Shown here piece by piece: positions 16,170 through 45,203 of a stretch of DNA of 64,000 bases. Below the pieces are notes generated by a model that saw only the letters and a list, made by a program, of their open reading frames with translations, was not told where the DNA came from and did no database searches. The translations under genes and the position numbers were made by a program. This DNA is from Trichoplax adhaerens. Its lineage: Eukaryota; Animalia; Placozoa. The stretch's first letter is position 1. Each line of letters begins with the position of its first letter. The DNA is taken from NCBI RefSeq assembly GCF_000150275.1, contig NW_002060968.1, positions 715,788-779,787 of the forward strand, given 5' to 3'.

Positions 16170-16938
16170 TGTCACAAAACAGCTTTGTAACAAGATAACG
16201 TAATGTACGATCAATAAGTCAATTCCTTGAACCACGTATCAAGGAACGATATCTGCACTGTCCTAAACACTTTTGCTCTACTAGCAGACTACACAAAGAC
16301 TTAAACGCCTCGTATTTTACATTAAACACTAAGTTTGAGAATCCACTTTATTACCCGATATACTGCATTTATATACTATTCCTCAATAGTTCATGAGTCA
16401 TAGTTAGTACGATTAGCTTTGGAATCATTTACTGAATTAGATATTAATTTTAGCTACTGCTCCCTTAATGCAGACGACAGTATTTACGAACAAAGACATC
16501 TGATGACTAATACAGAATAGTCAGATTACGATATGTTCTATCACGGAACATTTCCATGATAATTTACAGTCTACCATAAGTAAATTACAATCACAATGAT
16601 TGTAACTGTAAGCAGATGATTTGCATTCCCTATTATAACTATTAATTTCAGTATGTGTACAAGTGTCACTGTGATAAAAAGTCAGTGCTATATTAAAATA
16701 CAGTATATCCAAATTAGAAGTTAACTAAATAAGGATAGTCTAACAGAATTATCCTAACATTGATATTTCTACTGTAATACAGTATTTAACACTGTAACAA
16801 AGTGTCACTGAGATAAAAAGTCAGAGCTATATTAAAACGCAGTATGTCCAAGTTAGAAGTCAACTAAATAAGGATAGGCTAACAGAATTATCCTAACATA
16901 GATATTTCTACTCTAATACAGTACATAACACTATCACA
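16170..16938. mobile_element. Solo-LTR-like element, family A copy 2, with an internal tandem duplication of its last ~140 bp
   Basis: TGTCACA...TATCACA termini with a perfect 5-bp TSD AGCGT (16165-16169 and 16939-16943); ~16660-16799 is repeated at ~16800-16938. Confidence 0.88.
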
Positions 16939-16966
16939 AGCGTAAGTAATTGCAAATATATAGGTA

Positions 16967-17742: not shown

Positions 17743-18034
17743 TTCAGAATGTGTATAAGTGTCACTGTCATAAAAAGTCAGTACTATATTAAAATACAGT
17801 ATATCCAAATTAGAGGTTAACTAAATAAGGATAGTCTAATAGAATTATCCTAACATAGATATTTCTACTGTAATACAGTATATAACACTGTAACAAAGTG
17901 TCACTGAGATAAAAAGTCAGAGCTATATTAAAACGCAGTATGTCCAAGTTAGAAGTCAACTAAATAAGGATAGGCTAACAGAATTATCCTAACATAGATA
18001 TTTCTACTCTAATACAGTACATAACACTATCACA
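17743..18034. mobile_element. 3' part of a family A element duplicating 16650-16938 (likely the alternative haplotype of the same locus)
   Basis: Same 140-bp internal duplication and the same ~26-bp downstream flank (agcg(t/a)aagtaattgcaaatatatagg). Confidence 0.8.
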
Positions 18035-19129
18035 AGCGAAAGTAATTGCAAATATATAGGCATGACGTTTTATGGCCGAAAATGAACATATTAAAATATT
18101 GAGTATACCGTATGTAAAGAAATTTTAATATAAATCTTTACCATAAATCTAGTTCTTCACTCTCTATACTTAAATAAGTCGATTTATCAAACTTGCAATC
18201 GAAATCTCAAGGCTAATTTATGAGCAAACATTCTATTGTAACTGTCAATCCCAGTATCAGTTGTTAGCTAATCATATGCTACAATATCGACCAAATTAAT
18301 TCTAAAAATTTGGTTGATAAAGTCCTGATAATAAGTGAGTGTAAATGACGTCGATTAGTAAAAAAGTAATCTCTTAGGATGCACGATCGATGCATCCCAA
18401 TTCAGAACTTTCTAGTGATTTGATGATCATATTCATACAAGCAAACTGATATTATACCTACCATTCAGTCTGTTAATGCAGTAACACAGAATATGTCTCT
18501 TTATCTTGACAGCTGTATTGGTCAATATATTTATGCAATGCATTCCGACGATATGAACGTATTAGAGGATAAGATTCAACTTAAATGGAAATCTGTTGCG
18601 AAATGAAATATTCATTTAGACAGACGGGTTCTTACAAATATCAGGGACTGGCATTTACTATACAGTAGCATTTTGTTTTATCTTGGATTAAGATTGATTT
18701 ATTGGTTCTATTTCACTTCCATGTGAAAGAACCATCGGTACTGATATTGATATCACTTGGTATAATCGTTAGCTCAGTATAACTTTCATCTTTTCATTGC
18801 AGTTGATAAAGTATTGAAATCGCACGGATAATCGTTACTTTAATATGAATTTAATAAAATATTCATATACATACTATTTTCTATTGCTCTTACTGTACAC
18901 CTATTAATATGGAACATAAGTTTCTTTATCAAAGAATGAATAGCAAGATATTTTAAACTATTCCACACTTGATTCGTTTCCTTATATATTACTTAAAGAA
19001 AGAGTTGGTTTTTCTAATATTTTCATAGATTTACTGTGTTCTACGGTAATCGCATTACTAATAGATCTAATATCATAATTCAAATTACTATCTTACTAAA
19101 GTTGTTGACAAGTAATTTATATTTCTTCA

Positions 19130-22500: not shown

Positions 22501-25389
22501 TTAATACTGGGCCAGTCGCAACTGAAAATAATCTCTTAATATCTAGGTTTAACTAGGGTGAGTGTCGGATATTTCTGCAATCAGTTGAAATACGGCAAGC
22601 CTCAATATCGAGCAGTGAGATCATTACCAGGTGGAAAAATTTCTCTGCATTGTTAATTTACCGGAAGAAAATATAATCTTAAACAATTTACCATCAATGG
22701 TTAATAGATTAAATAATGCTCAGTATAATAACTTTGAAATTTATTGTCAGCTATAGACGTCAAACAGTTCACCTGCATTGAAAAATTTTTGTTGTAAATT
22801 AAAATTACATCCAATTCTAATCGACATCTTAATATGCTGGTATCTAGGTTATTATAACATGTTTTAGTCTTGAACTAATTTGATTAATTTGTTATTTTAT
22901 AAGGAGGTGTTAAAAAAATATTATATTTTTATTTAGCTCAATAGTCTCTGTATGAAAATTAAATCATTGGAATAATTTTGTTAGAGCAAAACTGTGCCTA
23001 CCTACTATTTGATCCAATTAATTATATAAGAAAATTTCTTGGAGCAATTTTGAGCAGGTTAGAGATTATGTTGTTTATCTAAGTTGAATCTAAAGACCAT
23101 GTGCTATAGTATAGTCTTTAAATTGATTGTTATTTTATCATTTTACTATAGCTGCATTCATTGATTTAAATTGTTAACTTTCATTATTGAAAGGATTTGT
23201 GCTACGAGTATATGCGTAAGCAGGTTACTATTGAAATATACTACAATACAATTTTTAGCGTTTCTTTTCCTTAGATAAAGTGAAGAAAAATTAATTCAGT
23301 TAATTAACATCTTGCTATTGCTGAATAAAGTTACAGAAATAGTATGCCTTGTTTTGAACGCAAATGTCATTTGAAAAATAGATTCATGAAACTTGGTCAT
23401 TTTAGTAATATAATTTAATAGCTGAAGTGCAGTCTTTTTTTTGCAAAGTCAATTCTAATTTCAGTAAACAGATGGCGAAAAGTTGTATGATGTGAAAATG
23501 AGCGATTAGTTAAATACAGCATTATTAAATATCTATTTATCGCGTTAGAAATATATTTGCTAGAATAATCAGGAATATGAGATCGTAAGAAACCTACTCA
23601 TTTTGAAATGAAAGTAAGTTTAGATTAACCAGGACTTAAAAAGATACTATTTTTGAGTGCTTTTCACAAAAATACAGTGATAACGAAAAGTTATAAAAGT
23701 CTCTTATTTTAACAGGATTGCATTGAATACTTTTTGACAAATCAATCGAAAATAGATTTTAGAAGACATTGTAATAACAAAAGATTCTATGATTCTATCT
23801 TTTACATCCAAAGTTCTCTATCTGTATTACATGAAATATAATGGTCTATTATTATAATTGATTTTCAAGATAGGATCTATCGTTGGATATAGAAAGCGAT
23901 TATAGCAATTTATCATCTCACTTATCTATTAGTCGACAATCTTTATCGATACATCAGCTGTCATACAATATTATTAGATGTCAAACAAGTATTTGGTGCT
24001 CACCAATGCGTACTATCATCATTTAATTTTTTTCAGCCAGCATTTAATTAAAGCTGGACGCTTATTTGCAACCGCTTTTCACATTGATACTTTAATTAAT
24101 AGACTGTTTTACAGATTATATTACTACACTTTTTGGGGTTAATAGTGATAATTGTCAATCAAAATGATCACCTTTATCAAGTGCAATGTTCATTACGGAT
24201 CTCCTCTACTTGATTTGGATTTAGTATATCATAATTTGAACCGCACTAAGTTGAAATTAAAATTGAAATTACACTTCGATCTTTAAAATCATGTTCTATT
24301 TGTTAAATACAATAAAATTAAATTACGGACATTGTTTCTTGGGTATCAATAAATAAAATTATTTTCGATTTTTGACCGTCATTAATCATTAGTGGTACAA
24401 AAGAAGATCATAATGAATTAATAGGATACCTATACGTATTATAGAATAAGAATGATGTAAAGTGATTAAAAACAATTGATCATGGTTTTTCTGGTTAAAA
24501 TAGTGCAGATTTTTGCTATCCTAATCGTAAAACAAAGACGTCAATAACTACTTGAGTACAATCATTATTATCTAAATGAAAATAATGTATTCATATCTAC
24601 TGAATATTCGATCTTAATTGTAAGAAAGGCTAATTAAGGATTTAACACAACATGACAATTTTTTAAGGCGGATATTAGGATATTATTTATCTTTCGATTG
24701 CGGTTGCTGACATTGTCTATAATTAATGACTGTAAACTATGATTTTCATCCTTGAAATAGTTTGGTTCGTGGAAATCTTAATATAGACGCAATTATGATC
24801 TACATATATCAATGATTTAACTTCTCAACCTACGTATTTTGCTAGTAATGAAATCATGACGCCATCTATGTCGTCGATTATTTTCTATTCAATGTTGTGA
24901 ATAGAAATTGTGCTAAGTTTAGAATGGCGATAAAATAGAACTATTTTTACTATATTTCTAGCTAATTCTAAGATGAAAGAATATATTATCAGACAATACT
25001 TTATTTTAACTAGGTAGTAAAAAATGATCAAATAAAGCACGGCAAAGGATTGGAAATTTAAATTATCTTCGTTTATTAGCCTTTAAAAGATTTCGACAAA
25101 AGGATGCTATATTTGCTAAATATATCTTATCAAAACAGAAGATAATGAAATTTATTTCTATGAAATAGCAAAAAATAGCTTGAATAATCTTATTCTCTTT
25201 TGATTTAATGCTTTATTTTCAATTCATTCCAAAGATCAATTCACATGCAGAATCATTGTGTGGATAAACCTATATAAGGTTTGTACTAGCTGCATTTGCT
25301 ATCATAATTCATCAAAGAAGTTTGCGAACGAACATTTGAATCAGTTTTAAATCAATTTTCTTTCCAAAGTTAACTACAGATATCCAAAA

Positions 25390-28300
25390 ATGAAATATTT
25401 AGCCGTTGTAATCGTAAGTTCACTCTTTACTATTCATGTTGTAATAACATACCTTTTTGATTGATAGAATGATCCTGGAGTATGTAAAATTAACTATATC
25501 AGCTATCAGTACTTTCTAAAATAATGTCTGACAATTTCATCAAAGTCGGTGCTTGCAATTTTAGAATATGCAGCGTATACTTTCAAACTATTGTACGTAT
25601 TACAATACTGGAAGCTGCTGTCTACAATTATTTCAGAAACTCTTAATAGTCATTTTATGACCCGAAACTTGATAGTCATTTCTAAAAATAATTGTGTGAT
25701 GTGATGATATGTACTGAATTACTGTGCTTTCGCAGCTAAGATTTCAGTTTAGAAAGTAGTCATATTCACCTGTAATGAATTTTAAGTACCGATACTTCTG
25801 GCAGCTATTGTAATGTAATAAACAATAGCCAAATCAATTTCTAAAAGCGTTGTATTATAAATAAATTAACAAAAACTTTACTTTGTAAATTATCTTCTAG
25901 TTTGCTTTTGTCGCCGTTGCTATTGCAGGTAAGAATACGAAATCGCTAAGCCCAATACGTGTTAAACTAATACTGATGAATGTAAATTTATCAAAGAATG
26001 CAAATTTTCGCTGATACCCATTATCATTCTTAGCCAGACAGTACAAAACTCCAGAAAACTGCTTTATCATATTATGATAGTTTTAGCTGACATTTATTAG
26101 ATGAGAAGATCTATGTCCATATAGAAACGCTAGTGATTACTTATTACTATTTACTAGCAATATTGAAGTCGTAATCATTTCGGAAACCTTAAAAGTCAAA
26201 TGTCTAGTGTGAAATGTTTGTAAAATGTCTTTGAAGATACAATTTCATTTCGATCTTAAACACCTTACACCGTACTATATATCGATTGACTATTTATTCT
26301 GCAACAATAAAGGCAATCTTTAGTACTATACTCTAAATTTACTTACGTTGATATATAATGTTTTACTAACATTACTTTCTTTTCTTATATTTTTCTATCA
26401 TTAGCCCCAGCACTCCAAGAAAATAGTAAGTACAATATAGGAATTAAATTATTGCTAATCTACGTTATAATTATTCTTATTCTATCTTATTTCATTTTGC
26501 TTTTTAATATTAAATTTAAAAAATCATTATATTCCATAGTCTATTTTATGCAGTTATACATATAATTGCTACCGTGTTGTTGATAAGTAAGTCCAAATAA
26601 TTATTAAATTAATTATTAGAAATGTAATGAAGACCTTCTAAGTAGTGAATATATTTAAATTTTAAATAAGATCAAAAAGTGGTACTGCTTAGTAAATTTT
26701 CCATTATCAGAAGACAATGAAGGATAGATATTGGTTGAATTGCAGTTTATCACACAATAATCAGTGATTTACAAAGAATACATCATGTCATCCATTATAG
26801 TCACATTATTTAGATTGATATTAATTTGCATCATCTAAAAAAGCACTTAAATATACGGAAATGGACTCGTATTTCGATGTTCTTTATGGGACCGATATAT
26901 TTTCTTTATTATATAGTTAGCTATTCTTTCAAGGTAAACTAAGCCAAAAAAATATTAATTTAGATGAACAATACTTTGTAATTTATCCAGAGAATTGAAT
27001 TTCAATAGCGATATAATATTTCTGACTTCAAACAGGATTATAAATTAAAGTAGCAAATGACTGTGTTGGTACCATATTTTTGATATTCCTAGCTGATCCG
27101 AGCCGTAAGCTATGAATGATTAATCACAATAGTGAGATTTATACTTACGATTACAATGATAAATCGTGACTATATTTATACAAATTAAGGCTTGTGTTGA
27201 TTGCCTCATTTTACAGTTATTACTGTATTGATCTGCTTTCAGAAATCCGATAAAATAGGCTATGCAGTAAATATTTACTTAGATATAAGTGTTTGAATTG
27301 AGAAAAATATCATTGAAAGCTAATTTATGCAATGCAAATGTAATTTTAATGCACTTGGGCAAATCAGTACTGTTAATATATAATTTCATGTTATGATTAC
27401 TTTCTACCTTATTTAAATGCTATAAATATACTAGATGACGTTTTCAATGTAATTATTTAAAGTTAGTTTATTAACTTGCCAATATTGAAGTATTAGGTTA
27501 TTACCGTTGATCAAATATAGCGAATACAATCCACTGCTACCTTTATTATTCTATAAACTGTAAAATCTTGTAAATTTTTTACAATTAAATTGCTAAGGTT
27601 AATTAGCGGATTGCATAGCTGGCTACATCCACTATAGAATTAGTAATTTTCAAAAAAATTTTCTATTGCCTATATATTGGTAATTTGCCGTATAAAATCT
27701 TTCAAATATTTAGATAGAGAAGTATATTCGTATAAGCTCGAATGAAAGAGTTGCATAGGTTTGATATTAAGATTGAACGACAAAATTTTTTATATTTTAC
27801 GTTATCAGCTGAAATCGATTGGTTCGAAAATCGAGGAGACCACGGTAAAGAATATTAAAATCGTTTTAATTACACAAATTATGATTTGATCACATAATTT
27901 AAAGCTCCTATAATTATAGCATTATAACTAATTTTACTACTAGTTTGTCTACATATACATGCTAGAAAGGCTATTTTTAAGATGCTTGTTCTTTAATAAA
28001 TTTACAGATCAACTACCAAGTATCTAGAAAAATTAACGTAAAACAAATTTCTAAATTACTATAGTCTCCGGGATTCAGTATTCCTTAACTACCTGATAAG
28101 AATTTCACACCTTTGCTTCTACGTTAAACAACTATAAAACTATTTTTTTATTCAACTATCTGCCAAGCTTAAATACCCTTCAGCAGCAGCTATCATGTAT
28201 GAGTCATAACAGTACACAAAATTTAGCTCCTATCGGATAGCTAAATTAATACAGACATTATTTATAATTTAGAACATTTACTGAATGATTCTAGGTAATT

Positions 28301-31300
28301 AGACTACATTATATCCACACTCAGAATTATTTATAGTATCATCATTAATTGAATATCTGTAGGATATTCATCACAAGCGTTACTAGACATAACGTTATCA
28401 TCAATTAATATAAGTTAACTTATGAGAGCTCTTACTACAATACAGCATAATTTACCATAATAACATAGTAACTACTGTAATTCTTACTGTAAGTCATTAT
28501 TAGTTATCTCCATATACAAATGTTAAACACTAAATTTAGTCATTTACTCTCACGAAGGTTCGTACCGTGACAACGGAATATATGTATAAAATCATACCTT
28601 ATTTCGATTGTACTTTAAGTAGTGAAATTTGATTTCCTAAATGATTCATGTAAATTATGATACTTTATTGGTTACTTTTTGTTATCGATAATCTCGTTAC
28701 GAAAATAGTCAGCCTATTTAAGAAATATAAAAGAATACATAGTGCTAAAGTACGCTATAAAAAAGCTTATAGTAAACTTTAATTTTTACTGTTATTTTCA
28801 TGCTTGGATATTACAGTGTGTTAGATAAGTAGTTTGTCTACTTATATATGGTAGAAAGCTTATTTTAAACATGCTTATTTTTATATAAATTTATAGACGA
28901 AAGGAATGATGACCTAATGTCATGTATGTACAGCGAATATACGTTAAATACCACACTTTATGTTGATTGCACTTTAAGTGGAGAATTTCGATTTACTATT
29001 TGATTCATTTAAATTATGAAACTTCATTGGTATTCTTTGCAATCTATAATCTCGCAACGTAAACAGACAACCTTTTTAAGAAACGTAAGAGAAAAGATGC
29101 TGCTATAGTTCATATAAAGACTTAAAAGAAAATATTAATATTTACTTCTATTTTCATGCTTTGATAATTAATCATAATTATTACAATAATTGCAGAGCAA
29201 GAAATTCCACCTGGCATGGGAGGTAATAAGTGTTCAAAAATAATAAATCTTACTATTAAATTTAAGATAACTACAAAATTTTCTTACAAAGCAAGAAAAA
29301 CATTTATAATTCCGAAATGCTATTTACTCAATGTGTTTAATGCATGATTAATGCTGTATAACTTTAATTTTTTAATTGCTTTACAGTTAGTTTTTTCAAG
29401 AGAAAAAATTGTAAGTAGTGTTGTGTAACTGAACTATATTGCCGATTTTGGCCAAGTCAAGGAAAATATCTGACCATCTGACTAAAACTGTTTCAAATAA
29501 TCTTACCTTTTATCCATGTTAGCCTTTCCTAATAGAAGTAAGGCATTGTTAATATACCTCAAAGCCTATTTCATTCAAATTAAGACCGTTCTTATCGATA
29601 TCTAAACTTAAATCAATCTTTATACATTTATAGTGAACCAAATCAAGAGACAAGGTACGTAAGCTGTAATTTTTGATGTAAGAAATGGCATTTATTTCTC
29701 AATTATAAATAATGTCAATAATTTTTTTCCAATCGAACACTTTTCCATTTTTTCCGTCGCTACATTTAACCTCTAGACCGTAAGTTAAAATTTATTAGGA
29801 AGAAATAATTATAGAATTTGCAATACAGTACTTTACATAGTGGATATTTGCAATATGGCCTTCATTTACTAAGGCAAATTGATTCCCAACTAAAACACTG
29901 TTTTCAATATTTTTCTTCCATATCCTTTCAATCGTTAGCTAACCATAAGTCCATAATAAAATACAAATATCAACTGTATTTCTTTTAAAAGAGATTTTTA
30001 ATTGCTTGATATCTAATTGATAACGTTTATTTTGCTTTATAGTTAGCTTATTCAAGAAGGAAGGTAATTTTTTAGATATTTGATGGCAGAAATGAAAATT
30101 TTCAGTCATTATTTAGTTAAATAAATCAATCTTAATCAAATCATTTTCTTGATAACTTCTGAACCATTAGCTGATCAACGTAAGTCTGTAAATAATCAGA
30201 AAAATAATTTTTTACATTCATGTTAAAGTAGAATTACAGTTGCTTAATTTTGGTTAACATCATATATTTTGCCTTACAGTTGCCTTTTTCAAGAAGGAAG
30301 GTAATTTTTCGATATTTGACGACAGAAAGAAAAATTTCAATCATTACTTACTAAACTAAATCATCCTTGATCGATCTTTTATTTTGGTATCCTATCAAAT
30401 AGCTCCTACTCCCGGCTGTAAGTCTGCAATTAACTACGAAAACCAATTTTTGTATTTTATTTTGTAACAGAATATCAATAGCTAGTTATCTGATTGATAC
30501 TGTATTTTCGCTTTACAGTTGCCCTTTTCAAGAAGGAAGGTAATTTATTAAATATTTGATAGCTGAAAGGAAATTCTAATCATTATTTGGTTTACTAAAA
30601 TATTACTTATCAATCTTTTTCTTTGGTGTCCTATCAAATAGCTCCTACTCCCGGCTGTAAGTCTGCAATTAACTACGAAAACCAATTTTTGTATTTTATT
30701 TTGTAACAGAATATCAATAGCTAGTTATCTGATTGATACTGTATTTTCGCTTAACAGTTGCCCTTTTCAAGAAGGAAGGTAATTTATTAAATATTTGATA
30801 GCTGAAAGGAAATTCTAATCGTTGTTTGGTTTACTAAAATATTACTTATCAATCTTTTTCTTTGGTGTCCTATCAAATAGCTCCTACTCCCGGCTGTAAG
30901 TCTGCAATTAACTACGAAAACCAATTTTTGTATTTTATTTTGTAACAGAATATCAATAGCTAGTTATCTGATTGATACTGTATTTTCGCTTAACAGTTGC
31001 CCTTTTCAAGAAGGAAGGTAATTTATTAAATATTTGATGACTGAAAGGAAATTCTAATCGTTATTTGGTTTACTAAACTATTACTTATCAATCTTTTTCT
31101 TTGGTGTCCTATCAAATAGCTCCTACTCCCGGCTGTAAGTCTGCAATTAACTACGAAAACCAATTTTTGTATTTTATTTTGTAACAGAATATCAATAGCT
31201 AGTTGTCTGATTGATACTGTATTTTCGCTTTACAGTTGCCCTTTTCAAGAAGGAAGGTAATTTATTAAATATTTGATAGCTGAAAGGAAATTCTAATCGT

Positions 31301-33282
31301 TATTTGGTTTACTAAACCATTACTTATCAATCTTTTTCTTTGGTGTCCTATCAAATAGCTCCTACTTCCGGCTGTAAGTCTGCAATTAACTACGAAAACC
31401 AATTTTTGTATTTTACTTTGTAATAGAATATCAATAGCTAGATATCTGATTGATACTGTATTTTTTGCTTAACAGTTGCCCTTTTCAAGAAGCAAGGTAA
31501 TTTATTAAATATCTGATGGCTGAAAGGAAATTCTAATCGTTATTTGGTTTATTAAACCATTACTAATCAATCTTTTTCTTTGGTATTCTCGTGTCTGTTA
31601 ACAGACTGTAAGTCTTTAATTAACGACGGAAATCAATTTTTATATTTTATTTTGTAATAGAATATCAATAGCTAGATGTCTGATTGATACTGTATTTTTG
31701 CTTAACAGTTGCCCTTTTCAAGAAGCAAGGTAATTTATTAAATATTCGATGGCTGAAAGGAAATTTTAATCGTTATTTGGTTTACTAAACCATTACTAAT
31801 CAATCTTTTTCTTTGGTATTCTGACATCTGGCGGCAGGCAGTAAGTCTTTAATTAACGACGAAAATCAATTTTTTGTATTTTACTTTGTAATAGAATATC
31901 AATAGCTAGATGTCTGATTGATACTGTATTTTTGCTTTACAGTTCCCCTTTTCAAGAAACAAGGTAATTTATTAAATATTCGATGGCTAAAAGGAAATTC
32001 TAATCGTTATTTGGTTTATTAAACCATTACTAATCAATATTTATCTTTGGTTTCCTATCAACTAGCTCCTACTTCCGGCTGTAAGTCTGCAATTAACTAC
32101 GAAAACCAATTTTTATATTTTATTTTGTAATAGAATATCAATAGCTAGATGTCTGATTGATACTGTATTTTTGCTTAACAGTTGCCCTTTTCAAGAAGCA
32201 AGGTAATTTATTAAATATTTGATGACTGAAAGGAAATTCTAATCGTTATTTGGTTTACTAAACCATTACTAATCAATCGTTTTCTTTGGTATTCTGACAT
32301 CTGGCGGCAGGCAGTAAGTCTTTAACTAACGACGAAAACCAATTTTTTGTATTTTACTTTGTAATAGAATATCAATAGCTAGATGTCTGATTGATACTGT
32401 ATTTTTGCTTTACAGTTCCCCTTTTCAAAAAGCAAGGTAATTTATTAAATATTCGATGGCTGAAAGGAAATTCTAATCGTTATTCGCTTTACTAAACCAT
32501 TACTAATCAATCTTTTTATTTGGTATTCTGGCATCTGGCAGCAGGCAGTAAGTCTTTAATTAACGACGAAAACTAATTTTTTATATTCATTTCAATGAGA
32601 AATTTCGTATGCTTAATATTTGACTGATACCGTATATTTTGTTTTATAGTTAGTTTTTTCAGGAACGAAGGTAAATGTAAATTACTAATCCACCTGATGC
32701 TGAGGAGATTGCATAAATCAGGCTGGCAATCATTACAACACAAATTCACTTATCTTGATCTGGTATTTTAAAATTAGATGCCTACAACAAGAAAGCTGAT
32801 AAGCTCACAAATCCTAAAGGTAAGCTGTTTCAAAATTGGTAAAAGATTTTCTAGCTGCGGTAGTGCTTCAACTTGATTTTATGATATCTCCTTATGTTTG
32901 ATATCACCAATGTTTGCTTATTTTGTTGTGACATCTAGATTTGCTACGTAATTTCAACTTTCTCCTTATATCTTACTGCTCCTAGTAAATTTTAGAACAG
33001 TTTAATCTTAACTTATGAGGATGTGATTTATAGTAATAAACTAATATACAGATAAATTTTTCAAAAACAGAGGTGTGCCAATTTGAGAAATATAAAGAAA
33101 TCAGTCCTGCACTTTTGATTAAATGTTGCAAGAAATATTCCTACGTCTTGAGTACATCTAAACTTAAGCTGGTTGATATCAGTTCTAAGATTACTAATTT
33201 GTGATATTAATTTCTTTATTTATGTCCTTCATTTTCTATAGCTTCTGAAAGCTTAGCTATATGCGCAAGGCTTATCTGGTGA
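25390..33282 (+). CDS. Microexon-encoded secreted neuropeptide-like precursor (LF/FF C-terminal peptides, KK/KR processing sites), ~39 exons; 3' end uncertain
   Basis: AG/GT-flanked exons: 25390-25413, 25901-25928, 26405-26425, 27093-27104, 27809-27844, 28897-28923, 29067-29084, 29196-29222, 29387-29410, 29523-29537, 29634-29654, 29777-29779, 30043-30063, 30171-30179, 30280-30300, 30403-30417, 30519-30539, 30642-30656, 30758-30778, 30881-30895, 30997-31017, 31120-31134, 31236-31256, 31359-31373, 31476-31496, 31605-31607, 31709-31729, 31838-31840, 31943-31963, 32066-32080, 32182-32202, 32311-32313, 32416-32436, 32545-32547, 32650-32670, 32778-32819, 32939-32947, 33052-33072, 33242-33282. Joined: MKYLAVVIFAFVAVAIA|APALQENTDPSPEIDWFENRGDHDERNDDLMSYNLF-KK-QQEIPPGMGVSFF-KR-KNSFPNRMNQI-KR-QDLSLF-KK-EADQLAFF-KK-(EAPTPGFALF-KK)x4-EAPTSGFALF-KK-QDFALF-KK-QGIPLF-KK-QAPTSGFALF-KK-QGIPLF-KK-QGISFF-R-NEDAYN-KK-ADKLTNPKDLLHKFFKNRASESLAICARLIW*. 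Confidence 0.88.
28034..28572. mobile_element. 5'-truncated family B solo-LTR-like element inside the peptide gene
   Basis: Shares taacgtaaaacaaat(c/t)tctaaattact...gtctccgggattca and the terminal gttcgtaccgtgaca with 19130-19565; the left TG terminus is missing. Confidence 0.75.
30270..32680 (+). repeat. Tandem array of ~233-240-bp units (~10 copies); each unit is intron + short exon + intron + 21-nt exon
   Basis: cagTTGCCCTTTTCAAGAAG(G/C)AAGgtaat recurs at a 239-bp period (30519, 30758, 30997, 31236); a 473-bp higher-order period appears later (31709 to 32182, 31943 to 32416). Confidence 0.97.
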
Positions 33283-38230: not shown

Positions 38231-38818
38231 TGTCACAACCCTCACTTGTGGCAAAGGAAAGTCAAGAACTCTAGTGTAGTTACTTAAAACTTGGGCTATT
38301 TCTCCCAGTACTTTCAGTTTCTATGAGAGAAGTATTTGAGATCTCGATTTCTCGGCTGATCTCCACAGACAACTGACTAATTATTACACTATTCTTCATG
38401 ATATGAGTCTTGCCGTTTCTTGAGCAATTACTTTTTTTATTCTACAAACACACGCGCTTAAATAGGTTTCTACAGTGAATTCCAATATTAACGAGTGAGA
38501 ATTCACGCTTTACAAGTTACATTAATTAGTATAATACCATTACTAAATGTACATGTCGATATTCTCAGACTTAGATAGCTACAAGCTATCAGGTGTTAAG
38601 ACGCTTAACCTTCATCCATATACAGCTCAATTTTTAGAGATTAACATACCTTATAAACCTACAGTAAATTAACTGCTAACAACTTCTATTTTTATCTCAT
38701 TTCTACCATCCTATTATCAGCTACAAGCGCATTAAAACATAGCACATAACCTTATCTTATCTATTCATAAGCATTCATTAATTTACAGTTACTTAATTAG
38801 TAACGGCGTACCGTGACA
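38231..38818. mobile_element. Solo-LTR-like element, family C
   Basis: TGTCACAACC...CGTACCGTGACA termini with a perfect 5-bp TSD CTGAC (38226-38230 and 38819-38823). Confidence 0.88.
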
Positions 38819-39564
38819 CTGACATGAAAGACGGATGGTCTGCTACTAAGTAGCATTCTAGTCAAGAACTGGTGACATTAATTTTGCTATTCATATAGTC
38901 TTTGTTACGGCTTCGGACTTTCTTCGATTGTAACTGATAACGAACGACGGATGGTCTGCTACTGAGCAGCATTCTAGGCCAGGACTGGTGACATTAGTTT
39001 TGCTATTCATTTGATCATTGTTCTGGCTTCGGACTTTCTTCGAATGTAACTGATAGGAAAGACGGATGGTCTGCTACTAAGCAGCATTCTAGGCAAGAAC
39101 TGATGACATTAATTTTGCTATTCATATAAACCTTGGACAGGTGTACTGATAGGAAAGACGGATGGTCTGCTACTAAGCAGCATTCTAGGCAAGAACTGGT
39201 GACATTAATTTTGCTATTCATATAAACCTTGGACAGGTGTACTGATAGGAAAGACGGATGGTCTACTACTAAGCAGCATTCTAGGCAAGAACTGGTGACA
39301 TTAATTTTGTTATTCATATGGTCATTGTTCTGGCTTCTGACTTTTTTGGATTGTAACGGATAACGAACGACGGATGGTCTGCTACTGAGCACTGAGCAGC
39401 ATTCTAGGCAAGGACTGGTGACATTAGTTTTGCTATTTATTTGGTCATTGCTCTGGTATGATGTAAGATTGAGTGTAAAGTATCGATACAGTTCCACATG
39501 ATCACAGTCTAGTTTTATTACCAAAAATGGATGATTCATTTCCCGCTGCAATTCTAGAGTCTCG

Positions 39565-39839: not shown

Positions 39840-45203
<5,364 letters not shown>

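Follow-up and report, generated by a model that had tools for sequence, protein, structure and literature searches.

Organization of the gene

A 64,000-nt window of the Trichoplax adhaerens genome (contig NW_002060968.1, positions 715,788 to 779,787) contains a locus made up largely of micro-exons that is, on balance, probably an LF-like multi-copy secreted propeptide gene of this animal, seemingly unannotated; it is designated the LF-like gene below. The window refers to this whole stretch of DNA, which has a G+C content of about 30%, and coordinates are positions in it unless otherwise indicated. The secreted-precursor model occupies positions 25390-33204 of the + strand and comprises 32 exons encoding a conceptual product of 228 amino acids, as deduced from a scripted rebuild of the exon chain. 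This chain was obtained by reading the sequence and listing donor sites and was then fixed by script, one exon (ACC) being added later. All 31 introns have GT-AG ends, and a single frame of 228 codons stays open. The 29 internal exons, located between positions 26405 and 32819, contain 3 to 42 nt each; each length is divisible by 3, and each exon is in phase 1-1, with the caveat that exons were picked by eye or by script partly for their fit to the frame. Their lengths are, in order, 21, 27, 24, 21, 3, 21, 9, and 21 nt, followed by 15/21-nt pairs, 3/21-nt pairs, and final exons of 21 and 42 nt, with five 3-nt exons in total. About 11 distinct exon types are present in the gene, each a multiple of 3 in length, a regularity beyond that expected by chance. 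Since most exons are copies of one module, independent phase events are few, roughly three to six.

A TATA-like box (TATATAAGG, positions 25271-25279, + strand), recognized by reading the sequence, lies 111-119 nt upstream from the ATG codon. Exon 1 (25390-25413, 24 nt, phase 0) encodes the first half of the signal peptide (MKYLAVVI) and is followed by a GTAAGT donor. Exon 2 (25901-25928, 28 nt) encodes FAFVAVAIA plus one base, thereby completing the signal peptide (A-I-A before A-P) and setting phase 1. As judged by inspection, the signal peptide consists of 17 residues, M-K-Y being followed by 14 hydrophobic residues ending in A-I-A before A-P. Exon 3 (26405-26425, 21 nt, phase 1-1) encodes (A)PALQEN, residues of split junction codons being given in parentheses here and below.

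The following exons, all on the + strand, are mostly of two types, designated N and C since they encode the N-terminal and C-terminal portions of the predicted peptides. The first N-type exon (29196-29222, 27 nt) encodes (K)QEIPPGMG and is followed by a C-type exon of 24 nt (29387-29410) encoding (V)SFFKRKN. The next exon (29634-29654, 21 nt), encoding (L)NQIKRQ, resembles a C-type exon that has diverged: it ends in ATC-AAG-AGA-CAA-G, compared to TTC-AAG-AAG-CAA-G in the tandem array described below. A candidate 3-nt exon, ACC (29777-29779; D, then junction L), has a pyrimidine-rich acceptor and a GTAAGT donor. It precedes a 21-nt C-type exon encoding SLFKKE (30043-30063), which is part of the oldest unit, a 9-nt N-type exon encoding (A)DQ (30171-30179), and a 21-nt C-type exon encoding (L)AFFKKE (30280-30300).

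Further downstream, a 15-nt N exon encoding (A)PTPG (30403-30417) is present in three additional identical copies (30642-30656, 30881-30895, and 31120-31134), as is the 21-nt C exon encoding (F)ALFKKE (30519-30539, with copies at 30758-30778, 30997-31017, and 31236-31256). A 15-nt variant with a P-to-S replacement, (A)PTSG, is found at 31359-31373 and at 32066-32080, and the 21-nt C exon encoding (F)ALFKKQ at 31476-31496, 31709-31729, and 32182-32202. The 3-nt exon ACT (31605-31607; D, then junction F) leads to QDFALF, and the 3-nt exon GCA (31838-31840, second copy 32311-32313; G, then junction I) leads to QGIPLF, the latter in combination with the 21-nt C exon encoding (I)PLFKKQ (31943-31963, second copy 32416-32436). 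The last small N exon is either GCA (32545-32547) or, by use of the upstream AG of a cagcag sequence, CAGGCA (32542-32547), both being in frame. It is followed by a 21-nt C-type exon encoding (I)SFFRNE (32650-32670) and by a 42-nt exon encoding (D)AYNKKADKLTNPK (32778-32819), the first part of which reads A-Y-N-K-K. The last exon spans positions 33071-33204; entered in phase 1, it contains 43 codons, including three for Cys, before a TGA stop codon.

Predicted peptides and processing

The N exons encode (A)PTPG, (A)PTSG, (A)DQ, D, G, and (K)QEIPPGMG, and the C exons encode x-[A/P/S]-[L/F]-F-K-K-E/Q. The 21-nt C exons always start with TT, and the split codon is consequently always xTT, specifying F, L, I, or V depending upon the last base of the upstream exon. 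In APTPG-F-ALF, for example, the 15-nt exon provides the T of the junction codon (T+TT = F). The first-pass annotation of this DNA had claimed that all internal exons are symmetric (multiples of 3, phase 1-1) and that each peptide is divided between an N-terminal and a C-terminal exon sharing a junction codon; the rebuilt exon chain agrees on both points, for 29 of the 29 internal exons in the case of symmetry.

Cleavage at KK, KR, and KRK is predicted to release 13 products with LF or FF ends, namely APTPGFALF (four copies), APTSGFALF and GIPLF (two copies each), and single copies of DFALF, DLSLF, ADQLAFF, GISFF, and a longer GVSFF form. Each predicted LF or FF peptide is preceded by E or Q, and 12 of the 13 are directly followed by a dibasic site, the last one, GISFF, being followed by RNE. 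Counted from the C-terminus, position -5 is occupied by Gly in 10 of the 13 peptides; the residue characteristic of the family at this position, Gly (or Asp), appears only if the N exons are included. Several similar short peptides, basic cleavage sites, and a signal peptide are among the features of a multi-copy secreted propeptide (neuropeptide-like) precursor, and all three appear to be encoded here.

In the proposed mechanism, the N exon would supply the variable head of each peptide, and the 21-nt C exon its tail and the KK-E/Q spacer. Ordered, constitutive removal of the introns of about 100 nt would be followed by convertase cleavage at KK and by trimming. We infer that the gene is expressed, that its transcripts are constitutively spliced, and that its products are processed and bioactive. 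Peptides of the LF precursor of Trichoplax have been detected by mass spectrometry as [E].NPSNIGHPLF.[K] (5 spectra) and pyroGlu-QPGHALFR (Najle 2023, Table S5, PMC10580291). These detections show that cleavage of the LF precursor takes place ahead of KK as well as behind the KK-E spacer.

Duplication of a two-exon module

Much of the LF-like gene consists of duplicated copies of one module. Tandem Repeats Finder detected an array at positions 30267-32526 (+) with a period of 239 bp, 9.5 copies, and 91% matches, and this array was found nowhere else in the genome. The unit comprises a 21-nt C exon, an intron of 102-108 nt, an N exon, and an intron of 101-102 nt. Introns of the array range from 100 to 108 nt, and the gene contains a single long intron, of 2770 nt. 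In an alignment of 11 units, pairwise identity of the core units was 95-99%, and the older units on the flanks matched the core at 62-88%. Units this similar may be collapsed or expanded in this draft assembly. Variable columns amounted to 5 of 21 in the C exons versus 82 of 190 in the introns. The two donor hexamers were invariant (0 of 12 variable columns; roughly p = 0.001 assuming independence of the columns), including those of the oldest unit (62-66% identity) and of the units harboring 3-nt exons. The latter units derive from a unit with a 15-nt exon: a 6-bp deletion took out the old acceptor, and a new AG is present three bases ahead of the retained GTAAGT.

According to this scheme, the gene would have grown by about 10 tandem duplications of the 239-bp two-exon module, and N exons would have been remodelled afterwards from 15 to 3 nt, the old acceptor being lost and the new AG used. 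Judging from their sequences, most exons outside the array likewise seem to be copies of the module that have diverged. The uniform 1-1 phase is best explained as being largely inherited from one ancestral module. Since in-frame duplication requires a symmetric module, uniform phase was a condition for growth of the gene, and later changes in exon length were multiples of 3 because the frame had to stay open. The locus displays a route for growth of a multi-copy precursor and for variation of its peptides, combining duplication of a symmetric two-exon module and resizing of the head exon.

Other repeated or divergent segments were observed in and around these units. The ~21 nt upstream from the ACT and GCA exons (31590-31607 versus 31823-31840) display about 10 differences, the remainder of the units being ~92% identical. 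The 2770-nt intron (window positions 26900-29170) contains module-like remnants, some of which are short matches possibly due to chance. These include a 12-nt AG...GTAAGC segment (CTGATCCGAGCC, 27093-27104) resembling the 9-nt N exon and a decayed C-exon-like stretch at 27456-27487. A 358-bp duplication (28576-28810 and 28935-29166) spans the sequence upstream from the 27-nt exon.

Splice signals and inclusion of the micro-exons

An AG-free zone of 17-89 nt (31-89 nt if the last intron is excluded) precedes the acceptor in all introns but one, the exception being the tandem cagcag acceptor ahead of the last small N exon. In most introns, this zone contains a branch-point-like motif. It extends over 70-71 nt ahead of the 15-nt exons, compared to 76 nt for the ACT exon and for two of the three GCA exons. 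For these three exons, the called acceptor is therefore the first AG past the branch region. The pattern AG-NNN-GTAAGT occurs 9 times in the window versus 1.93 expected, and five of the nine occurrences are inside the LF-like gene. The pyrimidine tracts were weaker at the acceptors of N exons (0.53-0.59) than at those of C exons (0.65-0.71).

The invariant donors, the complete introns of about 100 nt, and the Gly residue at position -5 together favor constitutive inclusion of the micro-exons. From these sequence features, it is likely that most transcripts include the N exons, and a somewhat less assured but still probable conclusion is that the 3-nt exons, considered separately, are also included in most transcripts.

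If the C exons were used alone, the N exons, particularly those of 3 nt, would be intronic relics, and the products would be the pentapeptides EVALF, QVALF, and QVPLF. Exons of 3 nt are indeed difficult to splice. In the units harboring them, the old acceptor has gone with the 6-bp deletion, and the segment in question is unusually diverged, as seen from comparison of the ACT and GCA types. However, the N exons, whose types have lengths of 27, 9, and 15 nt in addition to three kinds of 3 nt, are all multiples of 3, a property not required of relics, and their GTAAGT donors are invariant. The 76-nt AG-free zone, moreover, ends precisely at the acceptor, both for the ACT exon and for two of the three GCA exons, and the Gly residue at position -5 is regained only with the N exons. 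We therefore regard exclusive use of the C exons as very unlikely, the least probable of the alternatives considered, and retain inclusion of both exon types.

Comparison with the LF gene of Trichoplax

The LF prepropeptide gene (DDSQDGYALF; TrH2_008150 in Najle 2023) was located in the same genome at G000:C1414, ~255.1-251.1 kb, on the minus strand, where an exact coding match to the published LF peptide DSQDGYALF was found (peptide sequences from bioRxiv 10.1101/360925). The LF gene was observed to be itself a micro-exon array, with one 33-36-nt exon in phase 0-0 per peptide, a period of 238 bp, and at least 13 peptide exons. One of these exons encodes DSQGYALF-RK-D, and later exons end in PLF-KK-E right at the donor.

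In form, the LF prepropeptide gene is the nearest counterpart of the LF-like gene. The two genes belong to the same genome, and both appear to specify a secreted multi-copy precursor with peptides encoded by micro-exons. The LF peptides end in [A/P/L]-L-F, a motif shared with the predicted peptides, and Gly is present at position -5 in 10 of 13 peptides of each gene. The LF-family motif, G-x-[A/P]-L-F followed by a dibasic site and an acidic residue, is found in the LF-like gene, in which its fuller form is G-x-[A/P/S]-[L/F]-F, then KK, then E or Q. The spacer is accordingly KK-E/Q in the LF-like gene versus [RK]K-[DE] in the LF gene, and the module periods are 239 bp versus about 238 bp. In contrast to the single phase 0-0 exon per peptide of the LF gene, the LF-like gene uses two phase 1-1 exons and a split codon. 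The LF gene is located on a different scaffold. It is expressed, and its peptides have been detected by mass spectrometry, whereas no record of the LF-like gene was encountered in the searches described below.

That the 239-bp module is homologous to the 238-bp LF module was rejected, as three methods revealed no DNA homology. Rotated global alignment of the two modules gave a score of 15 versus 8.5 ± 8.8 for the null, blastn returned the LF-KK-E coding motif as its sole match between them, and nhmmer searches with unit profiles, in both directions, retrieved nothing at E ≤ 10. From these comparisons, the gene is LF-like by motif and architecture and is not a demonstrated LF paralogue.

Two additional observations were made on the LF gene. 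A candidate exon for its signal peptide, MRTILVFTLLVVAVSC, is present near position 257,759 of scaffold C1414. In Najle 2023, the LF model of strain H2 is listed without a signal peptide, and this model may therefore be incomplete. The peptide NPSNIGHPLF, assigned by mass spectrometry to the LF precursor of strain H2, had no contiguous coding match at the LF locus or genome-wide; its coding sequence is possibly split by an intron, located in a gap, or different between strains.

Comparison with other precursors and micro-exon genes

Exact coding matches to the published LFNE, MFPF, and WPPF peptides (bioRxiv 10.1101/360925) were also found in the genome. The LFNE precursor contains eight copies of QEPGISLFNE, the MFPF precursor contains DDLPGMFPF-type repeats, and the WPPF precursor contains NGWPPF repeats. 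These three secreted precursors likewise carry tandem peptide copies between cleavage sites. Their repeats follow each other directly inside one exon (periods of 33, 36, and 45-48 nt), no intron lying between or within the copies. Among the five precursors examined, introns between or within the repeats were only found in the LF gene and the LF-like gene. The LFNE precursor (G000:C1414:238354-238482, minus strand) was found to lie only ~15 kb from the LF gene, and a near-identical copy with more repeats is present on a 6-kb contig (C1024:5464-5658), which may be allelic or an unplaced duplicate. An ALF-KK match on contig C1409 was dismissed as a chance occurrence, as there is no peptide gene there.

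In the Lymnaea FMRFamide gene, in TAC1, and in CALCA, exons carry different peptides, and exon choice alters the peptide set. The choice is made among a few large exons. To our knowledge, none of these genes splits its peptides over two micro-exons or contains dozens of interchangeable symmetric exons.

The micro-exon genes (MEGs) of Schistosoma mansoni encode secreted products, and most of their coding sequence lies in very short exons with lengths divisible by 3, most often 15 nt (PMC10526429). Their architecture permits in-frame exon skipping, and alternative splicing of MEGs is documented (PMC10526429). The LF-like gene resembles MEGs in having most of its coding sequence in exons of at most 81 nt that are multiples of 3, as observed for 29 of its 29 internal exons. 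It departs from the interspersion of micro-exons with long introns, since its array introns have 100-108 nt and only one intron has 2770 nt; MEG introns are up to 5 kb long versus about 100 nt here. Unlike the predicted product of the LF-like gene, MEG proteins are not multi-copy precursors of cleavable peptides. Homology between MEGs and the LF-like gene is neither expected nor seen. The LF-like gene can be placed with two known kinds of genes, those for multi-copy propeptide precursors and the micro-exon genes; in it, an intron interrupts each peptide.

Predicted consequences of exon skipping

One-by-one deletion of the 29 internal exons by script always left the frame open to the same stop codon. 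Single-exon skips yielded 21 new cleavage products, including EVALF, QVALF, QVPLF, and EAPTPGSPTPGFALF. The first-pass annotation had stated that any skipping keeps the frame and creates new peptides, and in silico deletion bore out this statement together with both of its examples, EVALF and the extended APTPG-SPTPG form. It had also considered that symmetric exons might simply ease modular evolution, a reading supported by the tandem array of the symmetric 239-bp two-exon module.

Regulated or stochastic skipping of micro-exons could in principle allow one gene to specify LF-type ligands in many combinations, in the manner of MEGs. Apart from the 29 in-frame single-exon skips and their 21 new products, the split xTT codon would specify a hydrophobic residue with any upstream partner exon, the N-exon acceptors have weaker pyrimidine tracts than the C-exon acceptors, and the tandem cagcag acceptor allows an exon of either 3 or 6 nt without loss of the frame. 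Schistosome micro-exon genes provide a precedent (PMC10526429). The layout of the LF-like gene is nevertheless that expected for intron-by-intron recognition, a donor, a branch-point-like motif, and a long AG-free zone being present in each intron of about 100 nt. Short introns are recognized one by one (intron-defined splicing), a mode in which exon skipping is uncommon. Combinatorial skipping is also disfavored by the invariance of the donors in all 11 units and by the replacement of Gly at position -5 by E or Q that skipping of the N exon would cause in every peptide. Finally, uniform phase is already accounted for by the common descent of the exons and, being mostly inherited, does not by itself provide evidence for selection of skipping. 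We therefore consider such diversification by splicing unlikely. The more specific proposal that skipping of symmetric micro-exons, cell-type-specific or stochastic, provides this nerveless animal with a combinatorial library of LF-type peptides appears, if anything, slightly more doubtful. If true, it would mean that MEG-like diversification operates on intercellular ligands, with a hydrophobic residue at each new junction between head and tail. The locus offers an unusually clean substrate for the question of exon skipping as a diversifier of ligands in an early-branching animal.

Searches and weighing of the precursor assignment

Placozoans coordinate their behavior by secreted peptides, and the catalogue of these peptides is based on gene models and on mass-spectrometry searches against these models. 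A precursor encoded by exons of 3-42 nt escapes both, and the catalogue may consequently lack a set of LF-type ligands. A recent survey of placozoan secretory cells refers to fourteen prepropeptides of this strain but not to the LF-like gene. The literature on micro-exons in Trichoplax yielded a paper on mitochondrial cox1 as the only match.

The last exon, encoding 43 residues, was the only one long enough to be used as a query, the internal exons encoding 1-14 residues. A search of its own genome with this exon gave the self-match only and no paralogue. A metagenome scan for two C-exon motifs at the spacing of the array gave 0 matches.

Several results weigh against assignment of the locus to an LF-like precursor gene. 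When 1.84 billion representative proteins were searched exhaustively with a profile of the last exon, only three low-complexity chance matches were returned, and a protein word search with the same query returned no candidate. The predicted peptide strings were absent from the literature searched, and the predicted peptides were not found in the portion of the Najle 2023 supplements that was covered. Since the LF and LF-like modules share no DNA homology, the case for kinship with LF depends on a short motif. The conservation signal is limited, the array units being young copies, and inclusion of the 3-nt exons is itself deduced from splice signals. The last exon may be mis-called: use of an AG at ~33051, ~19 nt upstream, would result in a short alternative C-terminus. 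A 43-codon open frame in DNA of 30% G+C (~3% chance) favors the longer last exon. The blank searches may therefore mean either that the gene is missing from public models and RNA-derived proteins or that the last exon is wrong.

The lack of a match in protein records with the last exon as the query would also be accounted for by a non-working gene, the locus being either a 239-bp repeat of satellite type whose coding capacity is fortuitous or decayed, or a gene for a repetitive secreted protein that is never processed to peptides. As a convertase site, KK is weaker than KR or RR, and module-like remnants are present in the first 2.8-kb intron, in agreement with this possibility. Against this reading are 32 exons in one open frame, GT-AG ends throughout, a signal peptide, a TATA box, introns that vary more than exons and donors, and the processing at KK-E seen in the LF precursor. 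We consider a non-working gene improbable and favor the multi-copy propeptide precursor.

Neighboring features in the window

A Pfam scan of the open reading frames flanking the LF-like gene gave a sole match, to an AAA ATPase (PF00004, E = 3.8e-11), at positions 42258-42524 (+). This frame corresponds to an exon of a neighboring gene located about 9 kb downstream. Tandem repeats of 96 and 116 bp, with 86-98% matches, are present at 38818-39551 and overlap a 178-codon frame of the minus strand containing repeated Cys-rich segments. Two 139-bp tandem duplications with near-identical consensus sequences, located ~1.1 kb apart (16661-16939 and 17757-18035), possibly correspond to a dispersed repeat or to the end of a mobile element.

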